From the NCBI GenBank assembly GCA_047495785.1, contig JBLDXI010000002.1, forward strand, positions 2,604,001 through 2,668,000: a stretch of DNA of 64,000 nucleotides. The letters are read 5' to 3'. The stretch is from Lepidodermella squamata (lineage: Eukaryota > Animalia > Gastrotricha). Below are positions 3,291 to 48,029 of this stretch, piece after piece. Position 1 is the first letter of the stretch, and each line of letters opens with the position of its first letter. A program made the position numbers and the translations under genes. Below the pieces are notes generated by a model that was not told where the DNA came from, did not search any database, and saw only the letters and a list, made by a program, of their open reading frames with translations.

Positions 3291-4677
3291 TTAAAATTGT
3301 GAATGGATTTCCATACAAGTTTTCGAACAGTCGGCAAAGCTGCTAAATCTGTTTGCGTTGGCGCCGCAAAGGCCGCTGGGAAGCCTGACACAGTTGCCTT
3401 GACGAACGTCATATGAGTAGATTGCGTCACATTTTCCGTGTTTCTCAACCGTGCCGGTTTCAACCGGCAACAAACACACCTTGCCGTCGTAGTTCATCGT
3501 CTCGCTGATCTGAAAGACAGAATAACATATTATGATTGTAAAAGCAGAGCGTAAAACATCGATTTCAACCTTCTTCACGATTCTTTCGTCCCGGATTCCG
3601 AGTTACAAAGAATAATTATAAAATCTCACTACAGCGTGTCCCGTAAGTAACGCAAAAAATACATGGAAAAGGGTTCAGAAACTCTAAAATGAGACGAAGT
3701 CACATCTCATGACCAGAAAATTTTAGAAAATTAAAAAAAATCACGAAAATAGTAATAAAGTATGTCACTTGTTAATGGGATTAAACAATTCCGGAAAAAA
3801 TTGGTCCTATAACGGGTAAAATACCGAAAATTACCGAACCAGTTACCATCGGGGTTTTCCGGGTTTTCTCTGGTAAATTTCTAATTTCGTCGGTTTAATC
3901 ACGGATAAAAGATGGAATATTCTCTCGGAAGGTTTAATTTTAAAGAATTAATTAAATTTCCCACAAAACACCCGAAACTGAAAAATAGTTGCGTAACTTT
4001 TGGGATACGCTGCGGTGTTATATAAAATATTGTTCAAGGCGAAAAATGCGCAAAAATATGCGGTGATAAAATTAAAAATATATATAGCAATTCCAGCTTA
4101 ATTTTTATTTTCGCCAACAAATTTAGTCTCGAATCTTGAAATTGATGATTAGTCATTTAAAAAAGTATTCAATATCGGCATTGATCTCAAATTTACATAC
4201 CGTGCATGTCGATTTGCATATTTCCGGGGTTTCGAACGAGTTCTCGTTACCGCCGCAGCCGCCGTAGTCGAATTCGATGCAGGCGTGTTGTTTTGCGTCA
4301 TAACCGTACCGCTTCTTATTCGCCGCCTGGCCTTGATAACACCGCCCGTTGTCGATAGCCAAATTGCACGGGTAGATCTCACGTTCGAGGGCCGCTGCAA
4401 GACTTGCGTCATCTTGCGCTTCGGCTACAACTTCCGGCCGGCACGTCGTCACGCATGATTTGAGGTCTTTGAAGTGATTGCGGGCATCGTAGGAAACACA
4501 CGTTCCGTAAGTGAAAGGCTGGCATCGCCCGGTTAGGCGGTTGTAGGCGTATCGGGTTACTGAAGCTCGACACAGCCCCGTAATAACAGGCTCGTTGCAT
4601 ATAGAATTCGACGATGGAACAATTTCGCAATTTACGGCAAAAATCAGCCAAGCGGAAGTAAGGATTTTTAGGTGCAT
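3291..4677 (-). CDS. Secreted protein with three Kunitz/BPTI domains (2 exons: 4677-4201, 3509-3291)
   Basis: Signal peptide MHLKILTSAWLIFAVNC. Three Kunitz Cys patterns (FTYGTC..NHF, FDYGGCGGNENSF, GLCGANANRF). Phase-0 intron gtatgt...tttcag joins the exons in frame. Domain 1 has Arg at the P1 position (GLCRA). Confidence 0.9.
3632..4012. mobile_element. Tc1/mariner-type MITE in the Kunitz intron
   Basis: 24-bp imperfect TIRs: CAGCGTGTCCCGTAAGTAACGCAA versus the reverse complement of the right end, CAGCGTATCCCAAAAGTTACGCAA (4 mismatches). TA on the left flank; no ORF. Confidence 0.65.
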
Positions 4678-4913
4678 TTTTAAATTGAATACTGACTTTT
4701 GTCTACTTTTCCACAATTTGTCTGCTGCAATAACAAGTCGTGTGCCAATTTTCAGTACGCATAATCTGCGCAACAGCAGGTATTACAGCTAGAGTAAACA
4801 GACTTTGCTCGAAGATACCGGCTAATAGGATATCCGCAAATCCATCGCCTCACGTGGCCGCGGCAATTAAAGGCCATAGCCTCAACGTCAGATCTATTAT
4901 TTTTCGATAAAAA

Positions 4914-5322
4914 ATGTTGTTGAAAACTTTAATAGCTATCTTGCTGTCTGTGACATATGGTATGTGTCCAAGCCACCAAATTGTTTCATATTATTTATAT
5001 TTTATTACCATTTATAGCAGGTGTGGATGCGAATAACAGGGTTCGAGTGATTGCAGCGCCCGAGTGTCCCGTTAAAGAACACCAAGAATACGCGATTAAA
5101 ATGACCTGGGCGGCGATAAATCGCTGGGACGCGAATGCCGCTAAAATTGCGCGCAACGTATCGGAATCGATGAACTCGCGCTTCGGCAACTACTGGGGCG
5201 TCATGGCCTTCACGCAGCCGGTGGCTGAGCATGTCGGCGCCTATTTCTGGTACAAGGGCTCGAACTGGATGCGACTCACCGACGATGTGTACACGGTCGA
5301 TATTTGGCAAAACATTTGCTAG
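4914..5322 (+). CDS. Secreted dynein-light-chain(LC8)-like / ground-like-fold protein 1 (exons 4914-4959, 5021-5322)
   Basis: Signal exon MLLKTLIAILLSVTYG, phase-1 intron gtatgt..tagcag. The mature part aligns to the LC8 pattern (IARNVSESMNSRFGNYWGVMA..GAYFWY..WMRL..VDIW). Confidence 0.75.
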
Positions 5323-5723
5323 AAAATAATTTTATTTATATTATTATTGTTATTTACACTACTTACTATATCATACATAAAATAATAAAATACAATATTT
5401 ACTTGGTTTTACTGAAAATTGACTGTACATCAATAATGACAAATGACAAATTGGGCGTGAAAATCCCTACAGTTGCTCAGGTAAAAAAATCAATGGATTT
5501 ATTGATCAGCGCTCGGCATTGTGTTGAATATTCGCGTGTACTTGTATATCGATCGACATTGCGTTAGGTCATAGTAAAAAATCCCGGGCTTTTTTATCAA
5601 TGGTGCCACATATTTTAATGATAATTTTTGTTTTATGACACCACCATTCTTGTTTTTAAGATAAATAATGTGTGTACATGGTTTCATTATTCGCTTATCT
5701 CGCCATAACTAACAACAACAAAT

Positions 5724-6107
5724 ATGCATTTAACTTGGTCGTTATTTCCACTGATTTTGGGCTACGTGTTCGTTATTTGCCAAATTTTCGACGATAATTG
5801 TCTCGTGGAGGCTGCGTTCGAGGCGAAACTCAGCTTCAACTACTCGTGCGCCGACCAGGAAAAATTGGACTTCGCCGTCGATGTTGTGACTAAGGCTTAC
5901 GCGAAGCATGAGTACAATGTCGTCGCGATCAGTAAGGAAGTCAGCGAGGCGTTCAATACGAAATTCGGGCCGTACTGGGGCGTGATAGCCTACATGACAC
6001 GGCATGCGACCAGCATCGGCGCCTACTTTTGGCACAACTCGAGCAATTATTTTCAGCTGAAGGACGACAACCTAACAATCGATATCTGGCAAAATGCGGC
6101 AGCCTAA
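5724..6107 (+). CDS. Secreted LC8-like protein 2 (single exon)
   Basis: Hydrophobic N-terminus. FAVDVVTKAYAK..ISKEVSEAFNTKFGPYWGVIA..GAYFWH..YFQL..IDIW is a clear paralog of protein 1. Confidence 0.8.
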   Translation: MHLTWSLFPLILGYVFVICQIFDDNCLVEAAFEAKLSFNYSCADQEKLDFAVDVVTKAYAKHEYNVVAISKEVSEAFNTKFGPYWGVIAYMTRHATSIGAYFWHNSSNYFQLKDDNLTIDIWQNAAA

Positions 6108-6327
6108 AACAATAACTCTACTGTTTTGACACCTTAAATGTGCCTTGTTGTCCTATAAGTCTCAATAAACATTGACGTCTCTTTTTCAAAACTGGAAATT
6201 ATCCGGACATCTAAATAAAATGCTGTCGCTGGTCATTGTTTGCTTCTGTCTTGTTTTTCCAACTTGAAAAGGATCCGGAGCTAGTTCAAAACGGCCAAAT
6301 TGCTTGTCAAGTAGCATAATTATTGGA

Positions 6328-6910
6328 ATGAAGCGCCTGTTCGCATTTATTTTCCTCACAGGTATTTTGTTATCAAATTTAAAACAGTCCTAAAAAGCCA
6401 GTTCATCTCATATGCCCTCAATGAGTTTTTACTTGATGGAATTATTCATCGGATTATCTATGATATTTCTCAGGTCCAGCGATTGTTATCTGCGCTGATT
6501 CCAATGCCCCCGGATCTGACACTACGTTCAAAACAATAGTGAATCAGAAATCAGAGCCATCAAACGGAGGAGCGTACCTACCAGGCATAGAATCTCAATC
6601 AACATCTCACAGACCCACCGTGGAGACACCTCGCTCTGAAGTAACCGTAATCGGCGGGCATCCTAAGCTTAGTGAGGAAATTAAGGCAGAAGCCATCGAT
6701 ATCGTTACGAACGCTCTGATTCATCAGAAATCAACCTTCGGTATGGCGAAGCAGATTGCTGATATTTTCAACGAGAACCACGGATTTTACTGGGGCGTTT
6801 CTGTTGGCGATCATACGCGCCTTTCGACGTATTTCTGGTACACGGGAAAAGGCTGGATACAGCTCACCAACGGCACTCTTTTGATTGACATTTGGAAGCA
6901 AGGTTGTTGA
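6328..6910 (+). CDS. Secreted LC8-like protein 3 with Ser/Thr/Pro stalk (exons 6328-6361, 6474-6910)
   Basis: Signal MKRLFAFIFLTG|PAIVICA across a phase-1 intron, in frame with ORF 6539. Domain AIDIVTNAL..MAKQIADIFNENHGFYWGVSVG..YFWY..WIQL..IDIW. Confidence 0.8.
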
Positions 6911-7018
6911 ATACAGAATTTAAATGTTTGCGAATATTTAATTCATTTATGCTAATTGATTAGTTCAGGTGCTAGTTTCATTAGTACTAACAATAAAAAC
7001 GTAATATAGGTAGTTACT

Positions 7019-9772
7019 ATGAACATGCTTTTGATACTCTGTTTCGTTTTTGGTCTAACAGTTGGGCAGGAGTCATCGCAGATCATCCGGGAGGCAAAAG
7101 CTTGCAATGATAGCCGGGAAATCTTGAGCTATTTGATGCAAATCGAGCTGGCTTTGGATGGCCAAAATGATACTCAACTGTCGTTGGGCAATAGTTCGAG
7201 AATCACCGATAACAGGTTCCTGTCACCTGTTTATACCCGCCCTAGCAAGTCGGCTCAGGCCCATGCGGAGCACTACCATGCTTTGCCAAATGGTAACCAC
7301 CCTCACGAAACCGGGGGTTGGACTTTTTCATTCTGGTTTAAAGTCGAAAAACCACCGACCTTAGTCACTCTAGCCGAACTATTAGCTCTCCATGCACCGT
7401 TGGAGATGATGAAGTTAGGCAATTGGGACGTTTATCTGTACTTATTAGAGAGAAAGCTGGTTGTTGGCCGCACTCTTTATAAAATGTATGTAGAAATCGG
7501 CAAATGGAATTTTCTAGCAGTCAGCGTAGATAAAGGGCACGCCGGAAAATTGTTCGCATATCAAAGTGACAGCACGGGGACGCTTCATTTGAATGTATTT
7601 GAAGATGGCCTATGGCTCAAAAAACTTCCCTCGATCGAGTGGGTTAACAATTCGATCAACGTAACTTGCATTTCCATGTTCGACAAAGCTTTGACAAGCT
7701 TCGAAATCGCGATGGTTCTTGCCATGTGCGACCATCAGCAAGCGTTCCGCTGCCCAGGATTCTCAATAGCTAATGTTAGCGTGAATGATCTACGCTCCGG
7801 ATTCATACCTAGGAACCGGTATAACGAAGAATTCTGTCCTTGTCGGGTCGATCGAGGTCTTGATTGGTACCAGGCTAGAAATAGTGACTGCAAGCCGATC
7901 ATCTCATACTCATACTCATACTCTTTATTTATGCAAGTTGCCTTTCGACATTTAGCATTTGGTATCAGACATCATCACAAGGCTTATGAGTCAACTATTC
8001 CCATGGTTGATGGTCGAACCTTGGTCCCCAGGCTTTGCGTACTGAGTAGCCATATCTTGATTGCCGGTGAATGGCGTCCTACACCGGGAGGGAGGAAACC
8101 GCGGTCTCGGGTGGATTTTGCTTGGCAGTGTTACCAGCAGGTACGCACTCGAGGATTGTGCCCTTGGCTCCGTAGTCGGCGACACGTCTTCCTGTCAGCT
8201 TGATTTACGGTCCCAGAAACGCCGCATTCAATGCGTAGAAGAATGATTGGTGTTGCGGTTCTGGGGATTGAACCCGTGCCTCTTCGCCGCCAGTGAGGTG
8301 CTTGGACCGCTCGACCACTTGCTCCCCCTGATCTCACCCCCTGGACCTTACGGGCTCAATGCTACTTCATTTGGCCAATGTTTTCTCGAAGTGGCAAGTC
8401 ATTTTGAAATGGTCGGCAAATTGTTCTCCCCGGAAATCGCAGGGACGATAATCACGGATAAGACTCAGTCTTTTACCTACACACTGTTTTATTACTTTTC
8501 TGAAGAAAAAACACAGAGTTTTGTCACTGAAATATAAAAAGAAACGTGAGACTTCATTGGACAACATCGGGAAAACGCGGAAACTTCACTTCATTCAAGT
8601 AAAGCGCGATAAGATGACGCTCAGTAAGCAGCATCGTCAGTCTTACAGAACCTTTGCTATAATTGACGCACCAGAGCCTGGGAAATGGAATTTCATTGCA
8701 ATGACGTATGGGTGGCCGACGGATACATTGAAGTATTATAAGGGAATCGAACCCAACTTCGACCCAGTGTTGATCTACTCTGGCAAAATAGGCTCCCCAG
8801 TATGGGGGGAATGGACAGGCAATTCAAGTATCCCATGGAATCCATTTGATGGCTTACTAACAGCTTATTCCTGTGTTTCAAAATACGGCACAAACCTGGC
8901 ACTTCAGGATATAAAAGTGATAATCGATGAATGCCGACGCATGTTGGTTCCAAGCACGTTGGTGACCGTCAATCGAACTGATGATGTAACACTAAATCCG
9001 TTGCCCAGAGATTGTCAGGTATTGGTTATGCGAACTAATTATATATGTAAAAATATGCAAGCTTGCAATTTTTAGGATTCTGCAGATTCGAGTATAAAAT
9101 TCGAGGAGAGTTTGTTCGCACTGTACGGCCATTTCACTTTTCTCGAGGCCAACGAAGCATGTAAACAATACGGTGGACACCTTGCCTTGTCAATCGATAA
9201 AAAAAATGCTGGTGATTTGAGAGACTCTCTGTTAATCGATTCAAGTAAGTAAAAATGACATTTTCTTCATTTTTTTACGGTGTGTGGATTTTCGTAAGAG
9301 TTTTATTGGGTCGGTGGCTATGAGGATAACCAGGGCGAAGTCCGTTGGTTGGACGGTACCTGTACCAAACCGGTCACCTGGCGTAAGCCCCTTCAGCCCC
9401 GTCCTGATCTTCCTTGTATCGCTATAAATGCTGGCAAACTATACGAAGCAAGTTGCCGAAAAGATACATTGAACGCTTTGTGCCAAAGACGTCTTATCAG
9501 AAACAACCTCATGGAAAATTTTGCAAACTACAAATTTTATCAAGCGGAGGATCTCGGGAATCTAACAGAAAAAGAAGGGAGAACTATTTGCGAAGAGCAA
9601 GGGGCTCGACTAGCGGCATTCAGCTACATCGAATCTCAATCCTTTGTCGCATTTAATCTTTCATCGATATTCAACTTATCGCAGACTGATGGAGACTTCA
9701 AGTGCTTGTTCCACAAGTCCCTTCGACAGTTTCCGCCAGACGATCCAGACTGCTCAACTCAGCGAATGGTCT
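7019..9772 (+). pseudogene. Copy 1 of LamG/pentraxin-C-type-lectin receptor; disrupted, lacks TM and kinase
   Basis: Collinear with 10793-13139. Interrupted by a 424-bp SINE (7907-8330), frameshifted near 8505-8512, and homology stops at 9772, before the TM. Confidence 0.8.
7907..8330 (-). mobile_element. tRNA-derived SINE inserted in an exon
   Basis: Absent from paralog copy 2 (GATCTCACCCCCTGG). Flanked by direct repeat ATCTCA (7901-7906, 8331-8336). Minus-strand head has Pol III A box TGGTCGAGCGG (8317-8307) and B box GGTTCAATCCC (8274-8264). 3' end is AATAAA followed by a (GAGTAT)n tail. Confidence 0.85.
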
Positions 9773-9794
9773 CAAATGTTATATTACGAATTTC

Positions 9795-10031
9795 GGATGA
9801 GTTGACCGGGGACGAGTTGTCCGAAAATTAAAATAAATAAAAAATACTTAATTATTTAATTTTAGTGACGACTCATCCGCGACAACTCGGCCGGGCCGGA
9901 CCAGTTGTCACCAGATGAGTTGTCACTATAAATAATTACTTAAATATTTATTTAATTTCGGATGAGTTGTCGCTGGACGAGTTGTCGCGGATGAGTTGTC
10001 GCGGACGAGTTGACCGCGGATGAGTTGACGC
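9795..10031. repeat. 14-15 bp GGA(T/C)GAGTTG(T/A)CGC repeat cluster, probably subterminal repeats of a DNA transposon
   Basis: Five tandem units at 9960-10031, further copies at ~9795-9822 and ~9899-9925, inverted copies at ~9865-9890. Begins just after the truncation point of receptor copy 1. Confidence 0.6.
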
Positions 10032-10585
10032 CCCACGTTTTTCCGAGCTCGAAAAATTATTTTTTGCTAGAATATTTCTGAACAAAGCAACGCTGTGAGA
10101 GATTTCAAAGTCCAATATGCACAGCCGGAAAAAATCGGAAAATCGAAATTAATGATCTGCCGGGCAAATTATATATCGCCGGATAGAGAAAATTCTCAAT
10201 ATGGATAAACTAATTTTTTCAGATTTTTCAAAATATTTCCGAAAGAGCCAACCGTGGCAGAAGAATGGCAATTCTGCCCAAAATCACCAAATATAGCACT
10301 TTTTGGCGAATTTTAGTAAATTATTCATGGGGGAACACTAGGTGTGCCTGGTATTATTAGATAGAGGGCCACTTCTAGTATTTATGAGCGGAAAATCATA
10401 ATTTTCGAAAGGGGTACCTGCGGCTTTTTTAATTTTTGAAAATAATTAAAATTATAATGGGCGGATACGGCGTTGGGTGGCATAAAAAGTGGTCGCGTGC
10501 CGCACTCTTTGCAATAACAGCTCGAATAAATTCACTATGGAAAGATCGTTAGTGTCCTATCTGTTACAGTGTTGTCTATGCGATG

Positions 10586-10676
10586 GCCTTTCGTGTATTT
10601 CTGGTACACGGGGAGGGCTGGATACAGCTCACCAACGGCACTCTTTTGTTGATTGACATTTGGAAGCAAGGTTGCA
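10586..10676 (+). pseudogene. Duplicated 3' fragment of LC8-like gene 3
   Basis: Near-identical to 6819-6907 (TATTTCTGGTACACGGG...GACATTTGGAAGCAAGGTTG) with small indels; no 5' part. Confidence 0.85.
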
Positions 10677-10792
10677 AAATACAGAATTTTAATAGTTTTG
10701 CTGTTTACGACTATTTAATTCATTTATGCTAATTGATTCGTCCAGGAGTTAGTTTCATTAGTATACTAACAATAAAAACGAAAAATAGTTAC

Positions 10793-13700
10793 TATGAAAA
10801 TGATTTTGGCACTTTGTTTCATTCTTGCTCTTACAGTTGAACTGCAGTCATCGCAGAGCATCCGGGAGGTAGAAGCTTGCCACAAAGTCGTGACATCTTG
10901 ATCCATTTGATGCGGTTTGAGCTGGCTTTGGATGGCCGAGATGATAATACGCAACAGTCGCTGGGCAATAGTTCGAGAATCGCCGACTACAGGTTCCTGT
11001 CCCCGGTTTATACCCGCCTCGACAACTCAGCTCAGGCCCATGTGCAGTACTACCGCGTTTTGCCACACGGGAACCACCCAGCCCCTCACGAAACCGGGGG
11101 TCGGACTTTTTCATTCTGGTTTAATGTCGAAGAACAGCCGCTCATCGTATCCAAACCGTTGAGCATAATGACAGCAGGCTATTGGGACGTTCATCTGGAC
11201 TTTTTAATGAGACCGGGTGGAGCCACGCTGGTTTTGGGCAGTGAGGGGTTCTCGAAACAAAATGTAAAAATCGGCAATTGGAATTTTCTAGCAATCACCC
11301 TGAAGGAATCTGGAGCAGTGTTTGCTTATCAAGGTGACAGCACTGGTAAGCTTCATTTGAATGTATTTCGAGATGGAGGATTGCCTAAAAAACTTCATTC
11401 GATTGAGTTGGTTAAAAATGTGATCAACGTAACTTGCATTTCCATGTTCGACAAAGCATTGACAAGCTTCGATATTGCGATGTTGTTTAACATGTGTGAT
11501 CATCAACAAGAAATGAATCGCTGCCCCGAATTCTCACTGGCTAATGTTAGCTTGCATGATCGACGCATCGAATTCATACCCAGGGTTAGATACAACGAAG
11601 TATTCTACCGTTTTAGGGGAGATGAATATAATCCTTGGTACGAGGTTGAAAAAAGTGGCTGCGAGCTGATGATCTCACCCCCTGGACCTTACGGACTCAG
11701 TGCAACCTCATTTGGACATTGTTTTCTCGAGGTGATAAGTCAATCTAGAGGTGGAGTGAGCAGCAAATTGTTCTCACCAACAATCGCTGGGGCGATAGTT
11801 ATGGATAAAACTCAGTCTTTCACCTACACACTCTTTTATTTCTTTTCTGAAAAACACACTCACAGAGTTTTGTCGCTGAAATCTCGCGACGAACCTGAGA
11901 TGTCATTGGAGTTACATTACGACGGGAAAACGCGGAAGCTTCACTTCGTGCAAGTGAAGCAAGTTGAGATCGTGTTTCGCAAGCAGCAACCGTTTTACAG
12001 ATCTCTTGTTGTAATTGACGCCCCGGAACCTGGAAAATGGAATTTTCTTTCAATGACGTATGATTGGCTGACGGATACTTTAAAGTGTTACAAGGGAATC
12101 GAACCCAAATTCGACCCAGTGTTGATCCACTCTGGCAAAGTAGGCTCCCCAGTATGGGCGGAATGGATGGTCAATTCAAGTACCCCGTGGAATCCATCTA
12201 TTGGATTACGTGGATTACAAACCGCTTATTCCTGTGTTTTCAAATATGGCACAAACCTGGCACTTCAGGATATAAAGGCGATAATCAGAGAGTGCCGACG
12301 CAAGTTGGTTGGTGGGCTAAACATTGTGGTGACCGTCAATCGAACTTATGATGTAACGCTGAATCCGTTGCCCAGAGATTGTCAGGTAACGGTGACGCGA
12401 ACCAATTACATGGGATATTACATAAGCTTGCAATTATTAGGATACTACAGATTCGAAATTCGAGGGTAGTTTGTTCGCACTGTACGGCCACTTCACATTT
12501 CTCGAGGCCAACGATGCGTGTAAGTATTACGGTGGACACCTTGCCACGTCGATTGACAAAAGAAAAGATTTGATAGACTCCTTGCTAATCGATTCAAGTA
12601 AGTAAACAGTATATTTTTAATCAATTTTTTTACGATAAGTGGGTTTTCGCAAGAGTTTTATTGGATCGGTGGCTATCTGGATGGCCCGGGCGAAGTCCGT
12701 TGGCTTGACGGTACCTGTATCAAATCGGCCACCAGGCGTAAAACAAATCAGTCCCATACTGATTCTTTTTGTATCGCTATAAAAGCTGACAATCTATACG
12801 ATGCAAGCTGCCGAAAAGATACATTGAACGCTTTGTGCCAAAGAAGTGTTGTCAGCAACAACCTGGTGGAAACATCTTCAAGCTACAAATTATTTCAAGT
12901 GGAGGATCGCGGGAATGTCACAGAGAAAGATGGGAGAGCTATTTGCGAAGAGCAAGGGGCTCGGCTAGCGGCATTCAACTCTATCGAATCTCAATCCTTC
13001 GCGATCAAGGCAGCCGCATTGGATCTTTCAACGAAAGTCAACTTATCCCAGACTGATGGAGATTTCAAGTGCTTGTTCCACAAGTCCCTTCGACAGTTTC
13101 CGCCAGACGATCCAGACTGCTCAACTCAGCGAATGGTCTTATGTGAAATGTTGATGCTGGACACATCTTCAACGTCCAAAAATCTCGTCTTTTTGGACAC
13201 GAGTATCATCGGATTTATAATGTTCTTAGTACTAATGGCATTGCTTATAGGGATCCTGATTCAACAAAATGGCTGCCATAGAATATTCAAGAGGGAAGAC
13301 CCTAACTCAAAAAGAGATTAGATGGATATTGATTGTAGCCAGATTTCTATCAACAAAGACGTCAAATTAGGAAGCGGTGCTTATGGACATGTGTTTCTAG
13401 GCAACGTTTTGCTGAAGGGGAAGCTAAAAGACAGAATTTCGGGTCAAGTCGCTATCAAGGTGCTACCAGAATTCCCGACGGAAACTCAGAGAATGGCTTT
13501 CGTCAAAGAAATAGTCTTAATGAAGAAAATGATGGATGTCTGCGGGCACCATCCTAACATTCTAGCACTCCTTGCTTGCGTTCCGCCGTCTGAAAAGAAC
13601 GAGAAGAAAAAGACTATGGATATGGCAATAGTGACTGAACTTTGCCAATACGGCTCTCTAAAATTCTTCCTCCCCAGTTTCGATAGCGATCGTTCCAGGA

Positions 13701-14395
13701 TTCTAACAGTTTTCAAATCTCTATTTAATGACAGTGACGCGAACTACATCATTCCCATCCGTGGCAAAAAACTCGAAGGAGTAGTGCCACAAGTTGAGAA
13801 AGCTGCAGAACCTTGTCTGGTCGATGATGTGATCCTTTTGAGACTATTGCTTTTGTACGCACAGCAAATTTGCAGCGCGATGGAACATCTCGCTGCAAAC
13901 AGTTTTCTGCACCGCGACTTGGCAGCTCGTAATATTCTTGTTGCTGGCATAGATTGCGTAAAAGTTGCTGATTTTGGACTCAGTCGAGACGTATACAAAG
14001 ACGCGGCTTACCACCAAGAATCGAAAGACTTTGTTCCGATCAAATGGATGGCACCCGAATCTATTAAAACCGGCCATTGCTCGACAGCTAGCGATGTGTA
14101 AGTATTTTTCGAGACATCAAACAATAATTTAAAATTTTTATACAGTTGGTCTTTTGGGGTGCTATTATGGGAGATAATTTCGCTGGGCGACACCCCTTAC
14201 CCAACTATCAATAACTGCGATATCGCGATGGAATTAGAACGAGGTTTGCGACTGGAGCGAATCAACAACGAGTTCTGTACACCAGAGGTGTACTCAATCA
14301 TGTATTCCTGTTGGTCATATATTCCTGATGCCAGGCCAAGTTTCACCGATGTGTTATCACGAATACAGAGATTGCGCGTTACTAGATCTACCTGA
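10793..14395 (+). CDS. Receptor tyrosine kinase: signal peptide - 2x LamG/pentraxin-like - C-type lectin domain(s) - TM - Tyr kinase; has a 1-nt frameshift (~10884) and an in-frame TAG (13319-13321), so possibly a pseudogene allele
   Basis: Exons 10793-12385, 12441-12597, 12654-14097, 14146-14395. LamG-like motifs TFSFWF..GNWNFLAIT..FDKALT and FTYTLFY..GKWNFLSMTYD. CTLD: EANDACKYYGGHLA..YWIGG..RWLDG..CIAI..ASC..ALCQ. TM: IIGFIMFLVLMALLIGILI. Kinase: GSGAYG, VAIK, HRDLAARNIL, DFGLSRD, PIKWMAPE, SDVWSFG. Confidence 0.85.
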
Positions 14396-14722
14396 AAAAA
14401 TAATAGTGATAAAACCTATTTTTCAGGCCTAAATTTATTGAAATTAAAAGAATTCCCCAAATAAAATAACTTCGAAACACCTTTACTTTTTGGCTTGGTT
14501 TGAGACGGTAAAGAGTAAATAAAGCAGATGAATGACCTTGAATGACTGGTCCACAACTGGAACTTCGGCCAAGTTACACTTCAAGCTGGTGCGACCTAGA
14601 AAAATCGCGTGCCTCAGAGCTGGTGCCAATTCGAGGGAAAGTGGCCTCATAAAATTCGTGTTTTCTCTCATTATAGCAGACTAAGAACCTCTTTTGTTCG
14701 TCTAAAGACTCATTCTTGTTTT

Positions 14723-19557: not shown

Positions 19558-22500
19558 TTAACCGCGCCAGTTGCCGCGGAAACCCCCGCGAAATCCGCCC
19601 CGAGGTCCTCCTCGCATCGCACCTGGGTGGTAGGCAGGCTGGTTGAAGGGCGGCGGCTGACGTTGGCCCGGGAAAAACGGGGGCGGGTATCGACCCGCAG
19701 CGCCCGGCGGCATCGGGTAGCCAGCGCCTGGGGGAGGTCCGTAGCTCGGGGCTGGTTCTTGAGGCTGCCAGTAACGATTCGGCAACGGCTGGTTATTGCC
19801 AAAACCATACCCGCCCCGGCCACCCCGGTTGTTCTGATAGAACCCGCCGCGACCCCGTTTCGGCGGAATAGGCGGCTGGTTCATGAAAGGCGGTGGGTAG
19901 TAAGTAGGCCCTTCGTCCGGTCCCGATGACGCGACGCTCATTCGTTCATCCTTAGCCGCTGCCGCTTCGTTAAACTGCTGCGGCGGATCGAGTGGAGGCG
20001 GTTGTTGAGGTGGGTTGAACGGCAGCGAAACCGACCCAACCCCGGCTGTTTGAACGCGATGAAGCCGGTTGTCGAGGCATGACAGCTCGCGAATCACGTT
20101 CCGCAGCTGTTTTTCCATCTCAGGCAGGCCGAGTTCGGACGAGCCGAGCGATTCCGGTTCTGTTGTATACCGGACAATAAGAGATTCAACGGCTGGGCGG
20201 AGTGCGGCAATCGCAGCCGCTGTTTCGACCTCCATTTCAATTTGCAGCCAGTTGTCGAGCAAAACCGCGTTGTCATTCGGTAAAAACGAGACAGCATGGC
20301 ATGACGTAGACAGCAAATGAAGCGGAGAAATCATTGTCAACTGCTTGCACGCAATAACCTGAAAAAAACGCAAATTTTTCGATTTTAAGGAGGATTTTTC
20401 AAATTTTCACCTTTGTTCTCAATTTTTCTGTGAAGACAAAATACGGCGATGGGAATTGAAAATCGTTTGTTTTCAAGAAATTGACCGAAATTTTGTTCAT
20501 CAGTGCCGTTTTGCCATCGGTTATAAACACTTTCCTCTTCCCGCCATGGATGCAAACGTTCGGATATAGCCCAAGTGACAATAGAAAACAAACCTATAAA
20601 TAAACAAAAAATTAATCAACAATTTTTCAAAATTTAGCAAAAAATTACGATGTCGAGATTTGTGTCTTCGCCTTTGAAGTTGTAGAACGAGTTTGTGAAG
20701 CATTCCTCTGGAAATCCTGATGCGACCATAATATCGACTAGCTGATCACGCGAGTCCGATAGCATTCTCATCGTATTGTAATTCAGCTGTTTCGCCTGGC
20801 AATACTGGACTAGCACTTCTTCGTTATCTTCGCCACATCGCCGTTTCATATCGACAAACCCGCAGTAGGCGTTGAGAATCGCCAGATGATCAGAATGACG
20901 ACTACCGGCTAGATACCGCACGTAGTTAGGCAAATGCCGGCCCATTACTAGGTCCCAGGGTTCGGAATTCGAGCAGGCAGCCGCGATCAGGGCCACCGCA
21001 TCGCCGACGTAGAAAATCGCGCCGTAGACCATCATTTTCGCGAGGTGAGCATCGACCGGCAGCCTGGCCATCAGCCGGCCTAATGGGGTCAATTCATCGG
21101 TATTTCGATCGAGAGCGCGCATTTCCCGCAGCATTGCCTCGGCCTCGATTACGACATCAAGCGGCGGTGTTTGAATCGCTCGGCCTAAGAACGGGCCCAC
21201 AGCACCTAGTCTCAGTAATTTGATCGCCAGGACAAGTTCAGTCAACGGTGACCGCAGCATTTCGGGCACTGAGTGCTGCTCGAGGCGGTCGAATCTCGCC
21301 CGAGAGCACAGGTGGAAGCAGAAACCAGGCCGGGTGCGGCCGGCTCGACCCCGCCGTTGTTCTAGGTTGGTTTTCGAGGCCCACACCGTCGCGTACTGCA
21401 CCATGTTGTTGTGGGTGGTGACGAGGCGGACGCGGGCTTTGCAAGAATCGATGACGTAGACCACATCTTCGATGGTCACGCTGGTTTCAGCAATGTTCGT
21501 CGACAGGATTATTTTGCGCATTCCGTCCGGAACTGGGTCGAAAATGCGGTGCTGTTCTTGGCGCGGGATTGACGAGTGCAACGGTAGAATTAGGAATTTG
21601 TTCGTCCCGAATACTTGATGGTTTTGAAGGTAGCGTTGCAGGGCGAAAATCCAATTCCAACCAGGCAGGAAAACCAGAATTGAACCGTTTTCGCCTCCCA
21701 TGGTCAGAATGCAGTAGAGAATTTTCTGAAACCCAAATACAAAAATTAACTAAAAAATTAACATAGGATTTTTTATCAAATTTATTTTATTCCACTTAAT
21801 TATTGAGGAATTTGCAGAGGAGTTGCCTTCTTTCTCTCTGCTTGAAGATCGCTACTTCAACTTATTGATATTCACTGTACATCCCTGTATCCTGTGCGAC
21901 CTTCACTATGTGCGACCTTCAATGCGTTCTCACAATGAGCCCACTCGTCGACGAAACTCTAAAAATCGTTACTACCGTTCATCACAAGGCTTTTCAAGCT
22001 GCTAATCCCGAAACCTATCGTCAAAACTCGTGGCGAAGGCCAAGGAGATCCAAGCTAAGCTAGAGGCGAAACTAGGTTTGAAGCCGGAAGAGGCGTCAGT
22101 CATAGGTAAGAGTTGAACGGCAAATCACCCTCGAAATGACTCGCTTCGCCACAACCCATTGCATGTAAGAAGCACTCGACTCACCATCTACCTGCGATGA
22201 ATTATTTTTTCGCATAATCGAACCGAAATACAACATCAGCTCGCTAATGCCAGGGGTCGGCCCAATTCCGCATTTGAAGCAAAATTTTGGGTTAAGGTAA
22301 AAAACGTCGGAAAAGCGAGTATGAGGCCAAGACATCCGCTTAGATATCTTACGGACAGAAAATGCCAGGTGAAGTGGGCGTGCGATACAGCCACAGCGAG
22401 TTGGATATACTGAGGAACGCGAAGACTCCTTCTCGCAAGCCGGTGAATCCCATCAGTTTTCTTAAGGTGATTTGCTATATTAACCTTGAATTTCCATGAT

Positions 22501-25500
22501 ATTTTGGAAATCGCGAGCCCGTTTGCGTCCTTATGAGGATGATAACTATTCAATTCAGCTTCAGCTATGAATATCACTTAATAAACATGTTATGGAAAAT
22601 GAGTTCCAATGTTTCAGCGATCTCTGAGAATGTTATCGAATTCGTTCTAGAGTCTTGTAAACTGGACTCTGCCTTTTTCCACGTGGCCATGCTTTCTCCT
22701 TCTAATTAAGAAGAACATTCTTAATTCTCGTAGCAGTGGATGAACGCTCCACTTTATTCAATTCGGTAGAGAGGATGGTTCTTAGGTTGTCTGAGCGCCC
22801 TAAGGAGGCATGTAATGCTCTTTGTTGCAGTTTACCGATTTCGGAATCTCTTACTTGTTTTGTGAAAAATTATGCTTTGAATAAAATAAGAAAAACTACC
22901 ATTTGTCGAATTTTCCAAAAACCTGTTTTAAGGATTATTATTGGTTACTTTGTTTCTTTGATAGGCTTCTACTAAAGATTTGTTTAATGGAAGACCTAGA
23001 GATGGTCGCGGTCAAAGCCGCAAGAAATGGTAGCTTGCAGACGTTGAAGCGCTTGGGCCAGCAAGGCTTTGACTTCAGTGCCATTTTCAATGGCAAATCA
23101 GTCCTGACTGAAGCCGTGCTAAGCGGAAATGTGGAGGTCATCCATTTCATTCTCCAAAAATGGCCTGAAGGGCTGAACGCGTCAAGTCGCTATGGGACGC
23201 CGCTGACCTGCGCGGTCGGTATGTCTGATGAGCAGGGGGCGGATCAAGCCCTGCGCGTGGTCCGCTTTCTCGTCGAAGAATGCAACGCCGACCTGGAGGC
23301 ACGCGATGGGGATGGCTACACCCCTGTGGCAGTCGCGTGCTTTCAGGACTCCACGACAAGTACCTTATTGGAAGGGGGGCTGACCTGAGGGCCCGCTTCC
23401 GTGGCAACAACTTGCTTCACTTGGTATGTGCTCATGGTGGCTCAAGAAAAGTGGTGCGGCTTATTGCACGTAGCAGCAGAGCTTTTGGCGGAGACAACGG
23501 ATGAGGAAGCCACTCCGCTCCAGATCGCCTGCAAATCCAAACATCCGGCGATTGTACAATGCCTCATCCAAGAGTTTCACGCCGACGTCCACCACGGCTC
23601 GCCTATTTTGGCCTGCGCAGAGATTTTGGCAAACCATGGGGCCAATTTAGGCGAGCGAGATGTTGGCGGGAACACTATTCTCCACCTTGGTGTGAGACTA
23701 GGCAACATCAACCTAGTCGATTTGGTGGCTCGTAAGTCGCCGGCCTTGCTGAAGGCTTGCAACAACGCCGGCATATCGCCGTTGGAGATGGCCGTGAGAG
23801 AAAAGAAAGAGGGAGTTGCGAGGGCCCTGCTGGACGCAATTTTTAGAACCCCATGAAATAATAGCTTGTAACTGTTAAAAAAGTATGTCGTCTCGTTGCA
23901 GTTCTTCTTTGTGTTTTTCGTTTGTCGTTGTGTCGATGTCGATTTTTAGGATTTGTCAATTGGTATTCATATATTGTTAACCATCTTTAAAGTTTATGTT
24001 CGATGTCGTCAATTTTATGCTTTGCTGTCGTCTCGTTGCTCGCTCTTTGTTAGACATGCTTGCTTGACTTTGTTAGACACGCAAGTTCAATCATTTGCCT
24101 GTGCAATCTACACATTCCAACCTTTGTTGACCGCGTATCACCAACGCCGATAGCCGATATATATTCATTCACCTACCGACTCGCTCTCAAATTACATGCT
24201 TACCCTAACACCTTGTTTATAAAACATAACGCATTTACTCCAACGTTTCGGTTATAGTCAATAACCATCTTCAGGGATTGTTTTAGAAATTAAATCAGAA
24301 TTTAAAATTTCTCGTTTTTTGACAAATGGGAACAAATTGTCTAACAATAAATTGACCGATAATAAGTGAAAAGTGGGATTTGGCGTATTTTCTGTATTTT
24401 CCAGCAAATGGCAAAACGTGTGTTGACTTGAAGAGGGACGATTCTTGGATTCCTAGATGTCTTAACTCAGTTTTTCTTGAGGATTTTGAATTTTCGAATT
24501 TCAGACCACTAGGATGCTCCTATCCTCCTTAAAACACGGAATACCCTAGAGATGCCCCGGAAAGTGTCATTGATTCAGGTTGTCCCAGAGACACTAAATC
24601 GCAACAAAATTTTAAAATATATAGTGAGATTCCTCACCTCAGATTACCCAATTAAATGTCGACAGCGCATGCAATACTATCATCAGAATTTATTGCGCGA
24701 GGGATTTTTAAAAATCCATAATGAAAAATGAACGAATATTTTAGGATTGCGTTTTCGAAATTAGAAATGTTCCCCCTAAACATTGAAGCCCATTTTCTCT
24801 GTAACCATGATGAATATAAACCTATTTTTTTATTTCGATCAACTCCTCGTTAATTGATCTTGAAAGCGGCATCAAAATCCCACGATGTCAAAATTTTCGC
24901 CACACCCCACTTTTCACTTATTTTCGGTCAACTTGTAATATATAAAAGATTGGATTTCTGAATGATTAAGCATCAAGTATTACCTCGATCAATTCGAACG
25001 GCATGGTCCGTTCCGAAATCGCAGCCATGGCCTTGCGAGTCTTCTCCGAGTACTTGGTCGCATCACAAATCGCATTGCAATCCACGTCAGCCGAACTAGT
25101 TTGCTGGCCACCAAGAGCCGCTTGACTCGACGTGCCAGGCGGCGCATCGTCATCGTCACTCTCGTCATCATCCGCCGGAACGTCCTCATCGTCATCCACC
25201 AAACCAGCCGGGCGCTTTCGTTTTCGCGGCTGGGTGATCATAGAAGCATCGAAATCAGTCATTTGAATAATATCCTCCAGAAAGTAATGCTCGACCGAAA
25301 ACTGGCGACCACGGACTTCGACGACGGAGACTCGGCCGAAATATTCCGTGAACATATCGACATTCACGGTCGCGCTCATCAAAATTATCTTCATCTGCGG
25401 GAATGCGATAGCCATATCACGCAGTAAAATCAACAGAAAATCTGTATCAATGTCCCTCTCGTGAATTTCATCGACAATCACGTGGGAGACACCCCGCAGA

Positions 25501-28210
25501 CCAGCCTCCATTTTTCGTAGTAGAACTCCGACAGTGCAGTAGAGAATAGCCCCGTAGGGTCGAGGTAGTTGCGAATCAAATCTGACTGAATACCCGACCG
25601 AACACCCCAGCGCCTCGCCACGTTCAGCCGCGACTCGTTCAGCAATAGTTACCGCACTGATTCGCCTCGGTTGAGTCACTACTATATTGCATTTCGCCCC
25701 GTAACCTTCGTCAATAGCTGTGTCCAAAATGAACTGAGGCACTTGAGTAGTTTTGCCTGAACCAGTTTCGCCCCGCACCAAAATTACGGTGGAACTTTCA
25801 ATTTCTCGCAGAATTTCGTCGCAACTTTCAAACACAGGTAAACGCTGCCGCTGTTGCTGTAACTCGACAGTATTAGGGTCTGAATAGCGTTGCTGATTGT
25901 GACTCCTCAGATCTACACTGATTTGATCCATCGATACAGAGGCGTAGTAGCCATCGTCGATATTTGCCGCTCGCCACGGGTCCCAGTTCGCGAGGGGCGG
26001 CGCCCACATCACGGTTTTCACTGTCGCGGATTGTTGGGTTTGAGCTTTCGGCTCCGAGGCGAATTCGCCCAGGTTGCTTTTAACGAGTAGACTAATCGAA
26101 TCTTGACCAGGCGGTTGACTAGAAACTTGAACTGGTTCGATGCCGTACGCGGTAACGACTCTACGAACACGTTCTGCGAGTTGGGGGTCGACAAATACTG
26201 CTTTTTTAGGCACGGCATTGCGATTTATTTTCGGGGCTGCGGTTCCACAGGCCTCGATGATGCCCAAATGATAGAGCTGCCGGACGATTGAGCAAGCGCA
26301 GGCTTTTGATGAGACGTGCTTAGTCGAACCGTGCTCACGAGCATTGATGTCTGAAATAATTTTCGGTAATATTTATTTTGCGATGTACACAAATTTAAAC
26401 AAACATCTGTTGAGTTCTCGAACGAAAATACTTAGTTCGCAGATAAATGTCCTGAAAAAATGAAAATGTTGCAATTAAAGCTAATGAAACATAATGAGGG
26501 TGAGTAAATAATAATTTTACTCTGAATCCTCGACACAAAAATTTCAGAGGAATTTGGTTTTCAAATTTCACATTTCCGCAACTAATATGAGAATTACCAA
26601 CTCTCAAGCCAGAAAAATACATAGATATAAGCTTGATTCCTAACATTAGGTCAACGTTTCCTAATCTTGGGTCCCGGGAGTTGTCTGGCAATTTTGATCG
26701 ATTTATTCCTCCGGACTTTCGAATCAAACAATATACTGAGAATTTTCAGGCTGTTCATAGGGGTCAGCTAAAGCTTGCGCCATTTTTTATTCGGCCCATC
26801 TAAGACGCAGAAATGCGCAGCTGGGTAAAAATGCAAATAAAGCAGCGAAAATTTCAAAAGCAAATAGCATATCGAGCTCAAAATTCTGGATTATTTGTTC
26901 GATTTTCTGAACGTAGAGCGGAAGGAAATGGGAATCCGATGGGTCGCGAATGCCTCCAACAACTTTTTTGAATTTTTTGGATGGAGCTAACATATGAACT
27001 TATTCTTCATACCCAACGGCTACTAGGTATGAAAATTCGAGGGCCATACGGGAAATGTTCAGGAATAAGCACTTGCAAAATTCAAAATCCCGAAAAATAG
27101 TTCAAACCGTCTAATTTAAAAGCTTATTTCATTGTGGGTAGAATATCATCCATATATCAGATCCATTCAATAGCGCTCTTCTTCGAAAAACGGTATCAGC
27201 TCTTATTTTTCGTAAATCAAGTTTCCCAATAATTATCGATTGAGAAATTCGCCGTTATTACGAACCAATTTTTGCATCATTTTTCAATTTTCACCGCATT
27301 TTTTAATTCATGTCAAATTTTCGGCTTATTGTCAATTCTTTCATATTCAGAATCGATGAAATAAGCCCTGAATATTCGTTTCCAAGCATGAGGTTCGTTT
27401 TGGCTTTCCGTCATTGCATCATCAGATCAACAGAGAGCCAAAACCAACCTCAAGCTCGCCATTATTATTTTCGCCAGCAATATCGATGACCCATGTTTTG
27501 TCAAATTTTCTCGTTTTTTTTTCTTGTTCGGTTCATCGGCAACAAATTGGACTGGCATTGAAATACCGGTTATGATCAGGGCCCATCGACGTGTACTTGA
27601 AGTCGACATTGCCGCCCTTGTTATGCGCCTGGACCCACTGGTGAAAGCGCTGTTTCGCATTGTCAATCGTCCAACCGCCGTGGTACGCCGCCGTCATATC
27701 GACCATCTCGTTATCGGCTACTTCGCGCTTGTTCGCCGCCGCATGCATCGCCATGCGATCAGCGAGCGCCATGCCCGGCAGCGAGTCGCGCGCAGGCAAT
27801 CCGAAGCGCGGCTGATTAGCAGCAGCGTTGTTGTTGTTGCTATTAGGCGCGAACGTCGAAAACCCAGCGTTGTTACTACTAGCCCCGGCGACGATGAATT
27901 GCGCCGCGCTGCTATTATTCTGCGGCGATTCGAGCAAGTGCGCGACTTCTTTCTCCGGCACGGCGGCGATGCGGACCAAGTACTGCACAAAATCCTTACA
28001 GGCGTTCGTCTTAGCATCACGCTTGTTAGTCGAGTTGCCGTAAGCTTCGTACACATATTTATCTGAGGCAACGAGGCGGCAGACGAAACGCGGCCTCGCT
28101 TTTGTTCCAGATTCGGAAAATGTAAATTCAGCGTTGACCTTCTGCTTTTGAAAAAATTCATTTATCCACTTCTTCACACTGGCTCCTGCGTCGTCTTCAT
28201 GATCAGCCAT
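19558..28210 (-). CDS. DHX9: ATP-dependent RNA helicase A (DHX9 / maleless / rha-1 orthologue)
   Basis: Two N-terminal dsRBDs ([18 protein letters not shown]), motif [39 protein letters not shown]2/OB regions, C-terminal RGG tail. Exons approx. 28210-27567, 26451-26405, 26350-24986, 21725-20649, 20594-20411, 20358-19558. Confidence 0.97.
22987..23856 (+). pseudogene. Intronless ankyrin-repeat pseudogene nested antisense in a DHX9 intron
   Basis: Ankyrin motifs ([53 protein letters not shown]) spread over three frames; frameshifts near 23345 and 23470. Confidence 0.75.
24352..24931. mobile_element. MITE with ~34-bp TIRs in a DHX9 intron
   Basis: Left TTGACCGATAATAAGTGAAAAGTGGGATTTGGCG; reverse complement of right end TTGACCGAAAATAAGTGAAAAGTGGGGTGTGGCG (3 mismatches). 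No ORF; TSD not evident. Confidence 0.65.
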
Positions 28211-29624
28211 TCTTCAATTTTCCTAAGAATGTACAAAAACGAAAATTAAAAAACAACTTTTTTATTTGATGCGCCCTGTCACTACGTTTTACTAATTCAT
28301 TTCGCTCACGGCTTTCTTTTTGTTTTCATCATCATCATTAAATTTCGACTTTTTTTAGCATTGTCGAAGAGAGAGAGATAGAGATAGAACCAAGTGATAA
28401 CACGCACAAGCGCAGACCGAGAGACAATAACAGCGGCTAAAAAAGACACGAAAACACGCATTTTTCATAATATTTGCTGCCGAATCCATTCATAATCAAT
28501 CGGTGTGCAATCTAGCGTTTCGATATATGTGCGCGTAAAAGATCAAATCGTTTGTTGTTATCGTATTTTTATACATCATCATCATCATTATCATCAACCC
28601 TTACGGCCGCCATCAATGAAAGAATCGTCGTCAATGAAATATATACGAGTAAATAAAAGGGTAATAAAGCACTTTTCAATCGCGTCAACACGTCAAACTA
28701 GAGAGAAAATTGTAGCTTGCATGTGTTTTTAAAGAAGGTTTTTATCGGCCTTTCAGACCAACAATTGTTCTTTTCCAATTTCCTGTCGGTATATGTTTTG
28801 CAGAGTTCAAGCAGCAAAAAGGGCGCGAGAGGAAAATTTCAAACAATAATCAAGTATGATTCAAGTAAAAAGGAAGCAGAAAAACCCGTAGGACGCACTC
28901 AGCGATATCGAGAAAAACGGTTTTTTGAAATCCACAGTGAATTAAGAAGAGAAAAAAGGAAAAACGCGACAACAAAAGACTCGGGTGTGTTATCGGTGTA
29001 AAGGAAAAAAATCAAATCATTCACAGTCATCGATTTCCAGCGTAAGGGAACAGCAATAATAATAATAATAATATATTCAATATATTTTATGATTTCAAGT
29101 AATTAAATATATAACTTTGATAGATAAACCTGATGCCATCAGTGCGCTTTTTCTTGATATGAGTCGACATTTCTCTTCTCATCCGCATAACAATCTGTGT
29201 TATTTACAAAGCACGTATAAAAAGATCCCCAGCAAATGAAGAGAAGTTCAAGAAGATGAAGAGAGAGAGAGAAAAGAACAAACAACGACAAACCGCGATC
29301 ACATGCACTACGCATATTGCCATAATTTCATAATTTTCTGAGATAATAATATGTTTCACCTCTACAATTTTTGTTTAGTTTTTTTTCATCTCACAGTTAT
29401 TTTGTCGATAAAGATACATTTGGCCGATATATAAGTATATTCTCAAATATTTGAATAGATTTCTGTTCTCAGGAGGAGAATAAATGGACTCAGTGGCACG
29501 GTGGCGAAAAGCCTGTCGCTACTACTACTAATGAAAGCATTTTCGAAGGGATCCACCTTAAAACAGAGCCGTGAACGACGAGTTTGTGCGTCATGAGAGG
29601 CAGATAGAAGAACGCAAAAAGGAA

Positions 29625-46716: not shown

Positions 46717-46986
46717 GACTGCCACATTTATATCTTTCGATCTTTTATTAATCACTCGTCTGTGTAGAAAATCAAAGAAATGTTCTTACTAAATTATTAA
46801 AACGCCGATAAGCATAGCTTTACATTGCCAATCGAAATGAAATTTAACAGTGCTGGTTTTAAACAATTATTGACTGATTTTAATAAAATGCGCGATGTCC
46901 TGATGCCATTGTTTGCTTTTGTTAGCTACAAAATGTTACCCGTGGCCTCGCGAATGTGACAGAAGGGTCCATTATTTGATCAAAAC

Positions 46987-48029
46987 ATGGTGAAATTTAA
47001 ATTTCACTCGCTACTGATTCATCTTCTTGCGAGATTTTTCGGCACTTATCAGCAGTTCAATGCTGGCTATTCAAATAATTTTTTCAACAACCAGTATCAT
47101 CGACAGCAAGGTTCCTGGAATTATGGTGGCGGAATCCCTCAAAATTATCCCCATGTGAACTGCAACTTGGAATTAGACAAGGGTATAGGGTGTTTGGCTT
47201 ACGATCCAACGAGATATTTATCGAAGCGATTTGGCTTCAACCGAACTTCGAACAGGTGCCAAGCGTTCGCTTTTTTAGGTTGCCGAAGGAATGCCAACAA
47301 TTTCGCGACCTTGGAACAATGTCAAAAGGCATGCAGTTCATATGGCTATGAAGATGAACAGCAGAACTACGATGTAAAAACGGATCGATGCAAGCTGCCG
47401 GTCAGTTCTGGGAAACCTTGCTCGCCTAGCATGACACGATATTACTCAACTAAATTCGCATTCGATGTGAAAACCAATCAATGCGTCTCTTTCCCGTTTT
47501 TCGGATGTGGTGGTAAATTGGTTCAGTTTTTCTCTTGAGCTTTTTAATACGAAACTTTGTCTCACTTTAAGGTTACGACAATCGTTTCGACACTCAGCAT
47601 GCCTGTGCTAGAGAGTGCCTGATCAGCAGTGGCCGAATTTTAACTACAACGACGGCATTTGCTGGGTTTGGTGGCACGAATCCAAGCTTATCGACGACTA
47701 CTGAACCTGTTGGTAGTATTGACTACGAAGTGTTTGCCTCCTCAAAAGCTGAACAAATCTCACACCGGTGCACTATACCCCCGGAAGAATCTGTCGGCAA
47801 CTGCGCAATCCTAATACGAGACAAAAATACGCATCGCTTCGATGCACAAACTGGAAAATGTTTACCAATGCCTCAATATACAGGCTGCCCTTGGGATCAA
47901 GGGAATAGATTTTCCAGTCTTCGCCTCTGCCAGGAGGTCTGTGTCTCTAGTCGCGCTCGAATGACCACAACGATAGCGTTCACCATTGCGAAAATCGAAG
48001 ACGAAGTTAAGTTCGACCTTAGTACGTGA
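46987..48029 (+). CDS. Three-Kunitz-domain protein (5' end uncertain)
   Basis: Kunitz patterns FAFLGCRRNANNF, FPFFGCGG|YDNRF, YTGCPWDQGNRF; intron ~47513-47571; Thr-rich linker. Confidence 0.85.

Follow-up and report, generated by a model that had tools for sequence, protein, structure and literature searches.

The usual account of receptor tyrosine kinases (RTKs) in bilaterians is of about 20 classes that form a fixed set. Among them, ALK and LTK carry domains of the MAM type, members of the ConA-like superfamily, and a jelly-roll module on an RTK is therefore not new in itself. The source paper for Sweet Tooth, an RTK of Hydra, is reportedly that of Reidling, Miller and Steele in 2000. As far as the accounts in two other papers go, Sweet Tooth has an ectodomain of four domains that are C-type lectin-like (CTLDs), also called SWT domains (PMC2680970, PMC3531485). 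Only 13 of the 40 RTKs of C. elegans fit human subfamilies (PMC2680970), and choanoflagellates have lineage-specific RTKs of their own (PMC3584944). The L-type and C-type lectin receptor-like kinases (LecRLKs) of plants combine a lectin-fold ectodomain, one transmembrane helix, and a cytoplasmic kinase (PMC7758398). The gene described here lies on the plus strand of a 64,000-nucleotide stretch of the genome of the gastrotrich Lepidodermella squamata (contig JBLDXI010000002.1, positions 2,604,001 to 2,668,000; assembly GCA_047495785.1), referred to below as the window, and appears to encode an RTK with two N-terminal modules and two CTLDs. We hold it somewhat better than even that this is a real lineage-specific RTK, whose ectodomain combines two probably ConA-like modules with one canonical and one compact CTLD, that the window carries a disabled copy of it, and that the copy on the other haplotype is perhaps functional.

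Three-frame translation of positions 10500–14600, together with alignment to an upstream paralog, gave what is, as read from the sequence, a single RTK gene at 10794–14395. The first-pass annotation, made from the sequence alone, had given 10793–14395; the gene and its stop at 14395 were borne out, while the ATG lies at 10794, one base further on. The parts and the order it had listed (signal peptide, ectodomain, CTLDs, transmembrane helix, and kinase) were all found by translation and Pfam. The start codon and a signal peptide of ~25 amino acids with a hydrophobic core (10794–10868) share 60% identity with the paralog's signal peptide, which lies at 7019–7093. An ectodomain exon of ~500 amino acids follows, in frame from 10877 to 12385, and its last residues form the start of the first CTLD (CTLD1). 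Intron 1 (12386–12440; 55 nucleotides, GT..AG) restores the frame; the paralog has the same donor and acceptor conserved around a counterpart of different length. The frame change at 12469 was first taken as a frameshift, and the alignment with the paralog gave the 55-nucleotide intron instead. The next exon (12441–12601) encodes the first half of CTLD1 and is 83% identical to the paralog at 9112–9249, and intron 2 (12602–12639; 38 nucleotides, GT..AG) restores the frame into a WIGG motif.

The exon at 12640–14097 alone encodes the rest of CTLD1, the second CTLD (CTLD2), a stalk, the transmembrane helix, a juxtamembrane segment, and most of the tyrosine kinase. These parts therefore cannot belong to separate genes. 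The single transmembrane helix that had been predicted was found at 13205–13261, where 19 hydrophobic residues are followed by a basic stop-transfer stretch, and N-x-S/T sequons number eight in the ectodomain and one on the cytoplasmic side. The ectodomain contains 18 cysteines. Reads on 10400–14700 came from two runs, an RNA run of 2015 (X1) and a DNA-like short-read run (X2). No read in them spans intron 2. Intron 3 (14098–14145; 48 nucleotides, GT..AG) is absent from an X1 contig, which joins 14097 to 14146, and the locus is therefore transcribed and spliced. The last exon (14146–14395) completes the kinase and adds a very short tail before a TGA stop at 14393–14395; RNA depth ends near 14433.

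The kinase occupies 13361–14097 (from the Gly loop to subdomain IX) and 14146–14365, and these two parts matched the Pfam family PK_Tyr_Ser-Thr (PF07714) with 162.8 bits (E 1.2e-47) and 56.2 bits (E 4.2e-15), respectively, against a cut-off of 23.1. All of the catalytic motifs are intact, namely the Gly loop, VAIK, the alpha-C Glu, HRDLAARN, DFG, and PIKWMAPE, and the activation loop carries two tyrosines. Between the lobes lies an insert of 57 amino acids (13673–13843) with a YIIP site at 13745, so that the kinase insert and the full motif set of the first-pass annotation were both confirmed. To judge from its motifs, the kinase is apparently catalytically competent.

The insert is a likeness to RTKs of the PDGFR/VEGFR/FGFR type (classes III–V). 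The activation loop (RDVYKD..Y) is one that we take to be VEGFR2-like, YIIP presumably resembles the PLC-gamma docking site of PDGFR-beta, and together we take the insert, the loop, and YIIP to be reminiscent of the PDGFR/VEGFR group. Unlike members of that class, however, the protein contains no Ig domain that Pfam could find, and identity to the length-limited database matches of the kinase (torso-like, Kit/FLT3, and FGFR-like proteins) was 30–34%. Scores against the PDB were nearly flat, with IGF1R (93 bits) almost as high as VEGFR2 (98 bits) and with FLT3 at 90 and PDGFR-alpha at 89 bits. In a tree of 30 rows and limited sampling, the kinase stood apart from both the FLT3/KIT and the FGFR clades, on a long branch of 1.14 changes per site; built from length-limited matches, this tree gives no class assignment. 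The earlier view was that none of the standard RTK classes has such an ectodomain; on these comparisons the kinase is one that matches no RTK class.

Two metagenome contigs, L001 and L002, were considered as carriers of close kinase relatives. Their kinase fragments were 50–54% identical to the target, with cores 53–54% identical over 96 amino acids. They match only the most conserved core of the kinase and are therefore not close relatives; the candidates were set aside as PSI-TIG (MET-like) RTKs. As observations in their own right, the regions L001 2177–6288 and L002 215–1152 are nearly intronless RTKs from one ENA metagenome sample of a small eukaryote, and L001 holds an open reading frame (ORF) of 1,032 amino acids with a PSI-TIG (MET-like) ectodomain.

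Pfam matched Lectin_C in two stretches (E 2.3e-7; 32 bits against a cut-off of 22.6), which is consistent with the one full and one partial CTLD reported earlier. CTLD1 spans 12380–12847 across two introns and contains WIGG, W-DG, and four Cys in canonical order; its second half (12640–12847) accounts for WIGG, W-DG, and three of the four conserved Cys. The second stretch is CTLD2 (12881–13150), a compact domain of 90 amino acids without the long loop region, the first half of which gave weak PDB matches to NKR-P1B, PLA2R, and CLEC4F. Sweet Tooth, which the first-pass annotation had named as the closest precedent, remains so, since both are lineage-restricted RTKs with CTLDs in the ectodomain (PMC2680970, PMC3531485). 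The comparison is one of descriptions only: Sweet Tooth is described with four CTLD/SWT domains and without LamG-like modules (PMC2680970), whereas in the gene here ~500 amino acids of orphan modules precede one full CTLD and a compact one. ALK and LTK have in the ectodomain a jelly-roll domain of the ConA-like superfamily, to which the N-terminal modules here may also belong. Unlike ALK, which has no CTLD, the gene here has CTLDs, and Pfam found no MAM domain, LDLa, or glycine-rich region in its protein. The plant LecRLKs are Ser/Thr kinases of the receptor-like kinase (RLK)/Pelle group and of unrelated origin, which makes them an analogy only. No description of an RTK that combines LamG-like modules with CTLDs was found in the literature searched. 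What we describe is a new ectodomain combination on an RTK of known general type, and the window holds a plausible but broken example of it.

Glycan recognition had also been proposed for this receptor, and here the proposal found no support. The tripeptides EPN, QPD, and WND, which mark the Ca2+/carbohydrate site of a CTLD, occur nowhere in the protein, and LYD stands in CTLD1 at the place which we take, from canonical CTLDs, to be that of WND. Glycan sensing is therefore unsupported. The best solved relative of CTLD1 in the PDB search was NKR-P1B, with a weak E value of 0.011. NKR-P1B binds a protein ligand and is not known to bind a sugar. A glycan or pattern-recognition function is speculation.

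The two N-terminal modules were examined by sequence and profile searches, language-model features, and structure prediction. Module 1 (10961–11560) is probably ConA-like (LamG_3-like), with an Atlas language-model feature score of 0.97 and Laminin_G_3 in 66 of its 100 Atlas matches. Module 2 (11690–12385) is probably pentraxin/LamG_3-like, with a score of 0.97 to pentraxin/Laminin_G_3 clusters. The whole N-terminal piece of 503 amino acids reached the same similarity to Laminin_G_3/pentraxin clusters, as did each of the two non-overlapping modules separately, and shuffled proteins get to 0.97 about once in 100. Laminin_G_3 was the sole Pfam family reported for either module. It matched the whole piece with 19.8 bits (E 9e-4) and module 1 of the paralog with 16.2 bits (E 0.012), both below the Pfam cut-off of 27.6. 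The two modules of the first-pass annotation are present, and their LamG/pentraxin label falls below the Pfam cut-off, resting on sub-threshold scores and language-model likeness. An internal duplication that would have produced module 2 from module 1, or the reverse, was not upheld, as hhalign gave a weak and short match between them (35 columns at the C-terminal end, 27% probability). Taken together, these results make it quite probable that both modules are ConA-like, of the LamG_3/pentraxin type.

The window copy carries two lesions. One base is missing at ~10886 (within 10880–10890) relative to the paralog, between the signal peptide and the ectodomain. In the paralog, one open frame leads from the ATG to module 1; in the window copy, the signal-peptide frame ends in a TGA at ~10899 because of the missing base. 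An X2 short-read contig covering 10619–11143 equals the window with 0 differences. The second lesion is an in-frame TAG at 13319–13321 in the juxtamembrane segment, between the transmembrane helix and the kinase, evident in the translation and in the reads. An intron removing the TAG was rejected, since no GT occurs between 13260 and 13345. The A at 13320 has an X2 depth of ~55 and is the sole letter in the X1 RNA contig. Assembly error behind both lesions was likewise rejected, as short-read contigs and the RNA contig carry them. No uninterrupted frame leads from the signal peptide to the kinase in the window, where two repairs are needed to obtain one, and because of the frameshift and the TAG this copy cannot make the full receptor. 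It is a disabled allele that is still transcribed and spliced. Directly after the TAG stands an ATG that opens a kinase ORF of 259 codons, a formal stop-start junction at 13319–13324.

The gene has been duplicated in tandem. An upstream paralog at 6819–9772 on the plus strand comprises the ectodomain only and shows 76–81% DNA identity by blastn (6819–7906 against 10586–11677 at 76%; 8329–9772 against 11670–13139 at 81%). The duplicated unit starts within a secreted dynein-light-chain-like gene, in its 3′ end, and extends through CTLD2. In the paralog, an insertion of 422 bp at 7907–8328 (boundaries by blastn) lies in module 1/2, frameshifts are present, and homology is lost at 9772, before the transmembrane helix, so that neither this helix nor the kinase is found. 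Homology resumes at 10586, and the intervening block (9773–10585) is not homologous between the copies. A very high-copy repeat occurs here, with an X2 depth of 4,600–9,600 at 10400–10687 compared to ~57–100 nearby. The block marks the breakpoint that removed the transmembrane helix and kinase of the upstream copy, and the locus is a birth-and-death locus, tandemly duplicated and decaying. Many contigs break at ~10580. Repeated GGATGAGTTGTC-type motifs were seen in both orientations at 9800–10010, and ARAGORN reported no tRNA in the window. Three small single-exon ORFs of 121–127 amino acids at 4957–6910 are dynein light chain-like, and two of them start with a hydrophobic leader. The RTK duplication took in the last ORF's 3′ end, of which a remnant is seen at 10586–10690, and a search with the first one found nothing among 5.8 billion proteins.

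A second sequence, ~93% identical to the window copy (34 differences in 476 nucleotides), was recovered from X2. Its depth was ~45 (47.9 of 102.5 at 13320) compared to ~55 for the window version, and depth was ~86–100 where both versions are identical, which fits a second copy on the other haplotype. At 13320 it has G, so that the TAG becomes TGG (Trp), and the ATG that follows reads TTG. The indels in its coding sequence add up to 6 and 6 bases, and the one indel of a single nucleotide falls inside intron 1. As it reads Trp where the window copy has the stop, and as its coding indels keep to multiples of three, the other haplotype may still be functional. Forty of the 104 differences were listed. 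Among these, six in the N-lobe of the kinase are synonymous and two are non-synonymous; those in the ectodomain and the juxtamembrane segment are mostly non-synonymous. This distribution suggests constraint on the kinase and fast evolution of the ectodomain.

If an intact copy exists, a ligand would bind its ectodomain and bring two receptors together, after which the kinases would phosphorylate the two activation-loop tyrosines in trans, and the insert's one YIIP tyrosine could then serve as an SH2 docking site. In the reading we favour, the tandemly duplicated locus is in decay: the upstream copy is without the transmembrane helix and kinase and contains an insertion, and the window copy is disabled by the missing base after the signal peptide and by the TAG before the kinase.

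Several results weigh against the favoured reading, that of a lineage-specific RTK with a disabled copy in the window and a perhaps functional one on the other haplotype. No read or record links the ectodomain to the kinase, RNA coverage in X1 being thin and patchy. The second copy does not align on 10688–11407, the region of the frameshift, at 90% likeness, and it could be a paralog (hemizygous) in place of the other haplotype. The intact catalytic motifs of the window copy fit a recent inactivation and also a functional gene rescued by unusual splicing. As for the ectodomain, Laminin_G_3 on module 2 gave 11.9 bits, below the same Pfam cut-off of 27.6, and an exhaustive phmmer search with the 503-amino-acid piece gave no match at E 0.001 among 1.84 billion representative proteins. 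A word-indexed protein search with module 2 gave none at E up to 10, and PDB profiles gave no meaningful match to the N-terminal modules. The predicted local distance difference test score (pLDDT) from AlphaFold was 27.9 with the whole piece as input and 29.2 with module 2 alone, values that are low because the ectodomain offers no alignment depth. The N-terminal piece also had no match in JGI metagenome contigs. Together with the phmmer and PDB results, this agrees with the first-pass proposal of a lineage-specific receptor, and the ectodomain being lineage-specific, with an N-terminal part without relatives in the databases searched, is a supported conclusion from sequence comparison.

The same data could be taken to mean that the gene is a dead pseudogene on both haplotypes, that the family is being lost, and that the RNA reflects residual transcription of a decaying gene. 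Two disabling lesions in the window copy, a neighbouring paralog that is clearly dead, and the lack of a relative in any database searched are all in keeping with this. So are a dN/dS (ratio of non-synonymous to synonymous change) of 0.61 between the two copies, about 1.1 over the CTLD part, and the mostly non-synonymous differences listed for the ectodomain and juxtamembrane segment of the second copy. The second copy itself speaks against it, however, with Trp for the stop, frame-preserving coding indels, and six synonymous differences out of eight in the kinase N-lobe, and every catalytic motif is intact even in the window copy. We therefore regard loss on both haplotypes as fairly unlikely, though well within the range to be reckoned with.

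An alternative that concerns the ectodomain only is that the RTK is real and its N-terminal modules adopt a new fold or another beta-rich fold, and not that of LamG/pentraxin. The Laminin_G_3 scores below the Pfam cut-off, the empty PDB profile search, and the short hhalign match between the modules are what would be expected of such a fold, and shared Atlas features numbered 112–161 of 256, fewer than the 170 that true members of a family typically share. Against it, all three Atlas queries reached 0.97, including those with the two non-overlapping modules, the top Atlas matches fall nearly all in the ConA-like clan, and Laminin_G_3 was the only Pfam family to appear, independently in module 1 of the paralog and in module 2 of the target. 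A different fold is, on this balance, unlikely.

We consider it very improbable that the window allele is functional in an altered form, with a cryptic intron of 60 nucleotides at 10869–10928 bypassing the frameshift, the TAG yielding a membrane-anchored, kinase-less decoy or co-receptor, and reinitiation at the next ATG perhaps giving a soluble kinase: the GT..AG pair would keep the frame at a length near that of the other introns, an ATG opening the kinase ORF does follow the TAG directly, and the TAG allele is transcribed, but both sites (the donor being GTAGAA) look poor beside those of the three real introns, this place is coding in the paralog and lacks a GT, no splice joint was reported there in the reads on 10400–14700, reinitiation after an ORF of roughly 2.4 kb is inefficient in eukaryotes, and the ATG, being TTG in the second haplotype, looks accidental.

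Like the RTK radiations of C. elegans and the choanoflagellates, the gene in the favoured reading joins a conserved tyrosine kinase to an ectodomain found nowhere else. Genes of this kind indicate that the tyrosine-kinase module keeps recombining with new extracellular modules in particular lineages. If there is an intact allele and it works, lectin-type recognition domains would be joined directly to phosphotyrosine signalling, and the null allele in the heterozygous state, together with the dead tandem copy, would point to a fast-turnover recognition gene and not a developmental receptor. A further step, which we think doubtful, would be that the other haplotype encodes an intact receptor from a lineage-specific RTK radiation with immune-type recognition ectodomains, in this case of two ConA-like modules and CTLDs. 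Such a receptor would sense patterns or self/non-self from the germline and feed directly into phosphotyrosine signalling, as the animal equivalent of the plant lectin receptor kinases, with presence/absence and null alleles maintained as at other fast-evolving recognition loci.

Other genes were noted elsewhere in the window. A large helicase gene on the minus strand at 19558–28213, read as DHX9-like, has a dsRNA-binding motif, DEAD, Helicase_C, and HA2 on successive ORFs, and plus-strand ORFs at 22885–23853 lie inside a 3-kb gap between its exons. A MAST-type kinase gene follows on the minus strand at 30049–35454, with DUF1908 (E 2e-41), a protein kinase domain, and PDZ on successive ORFs. 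These two neighbours and the introns of 38–55 nucleotides are those of an animal-type genome. Smaller features were seen at 4156–4782 (minus strand), 46960–47535 (plus strand), and 50064–50609 (plus strand), comprising two ORFs with two Kunitz/BPTI stretches each and one ORF with a Neuralized homology repeat.

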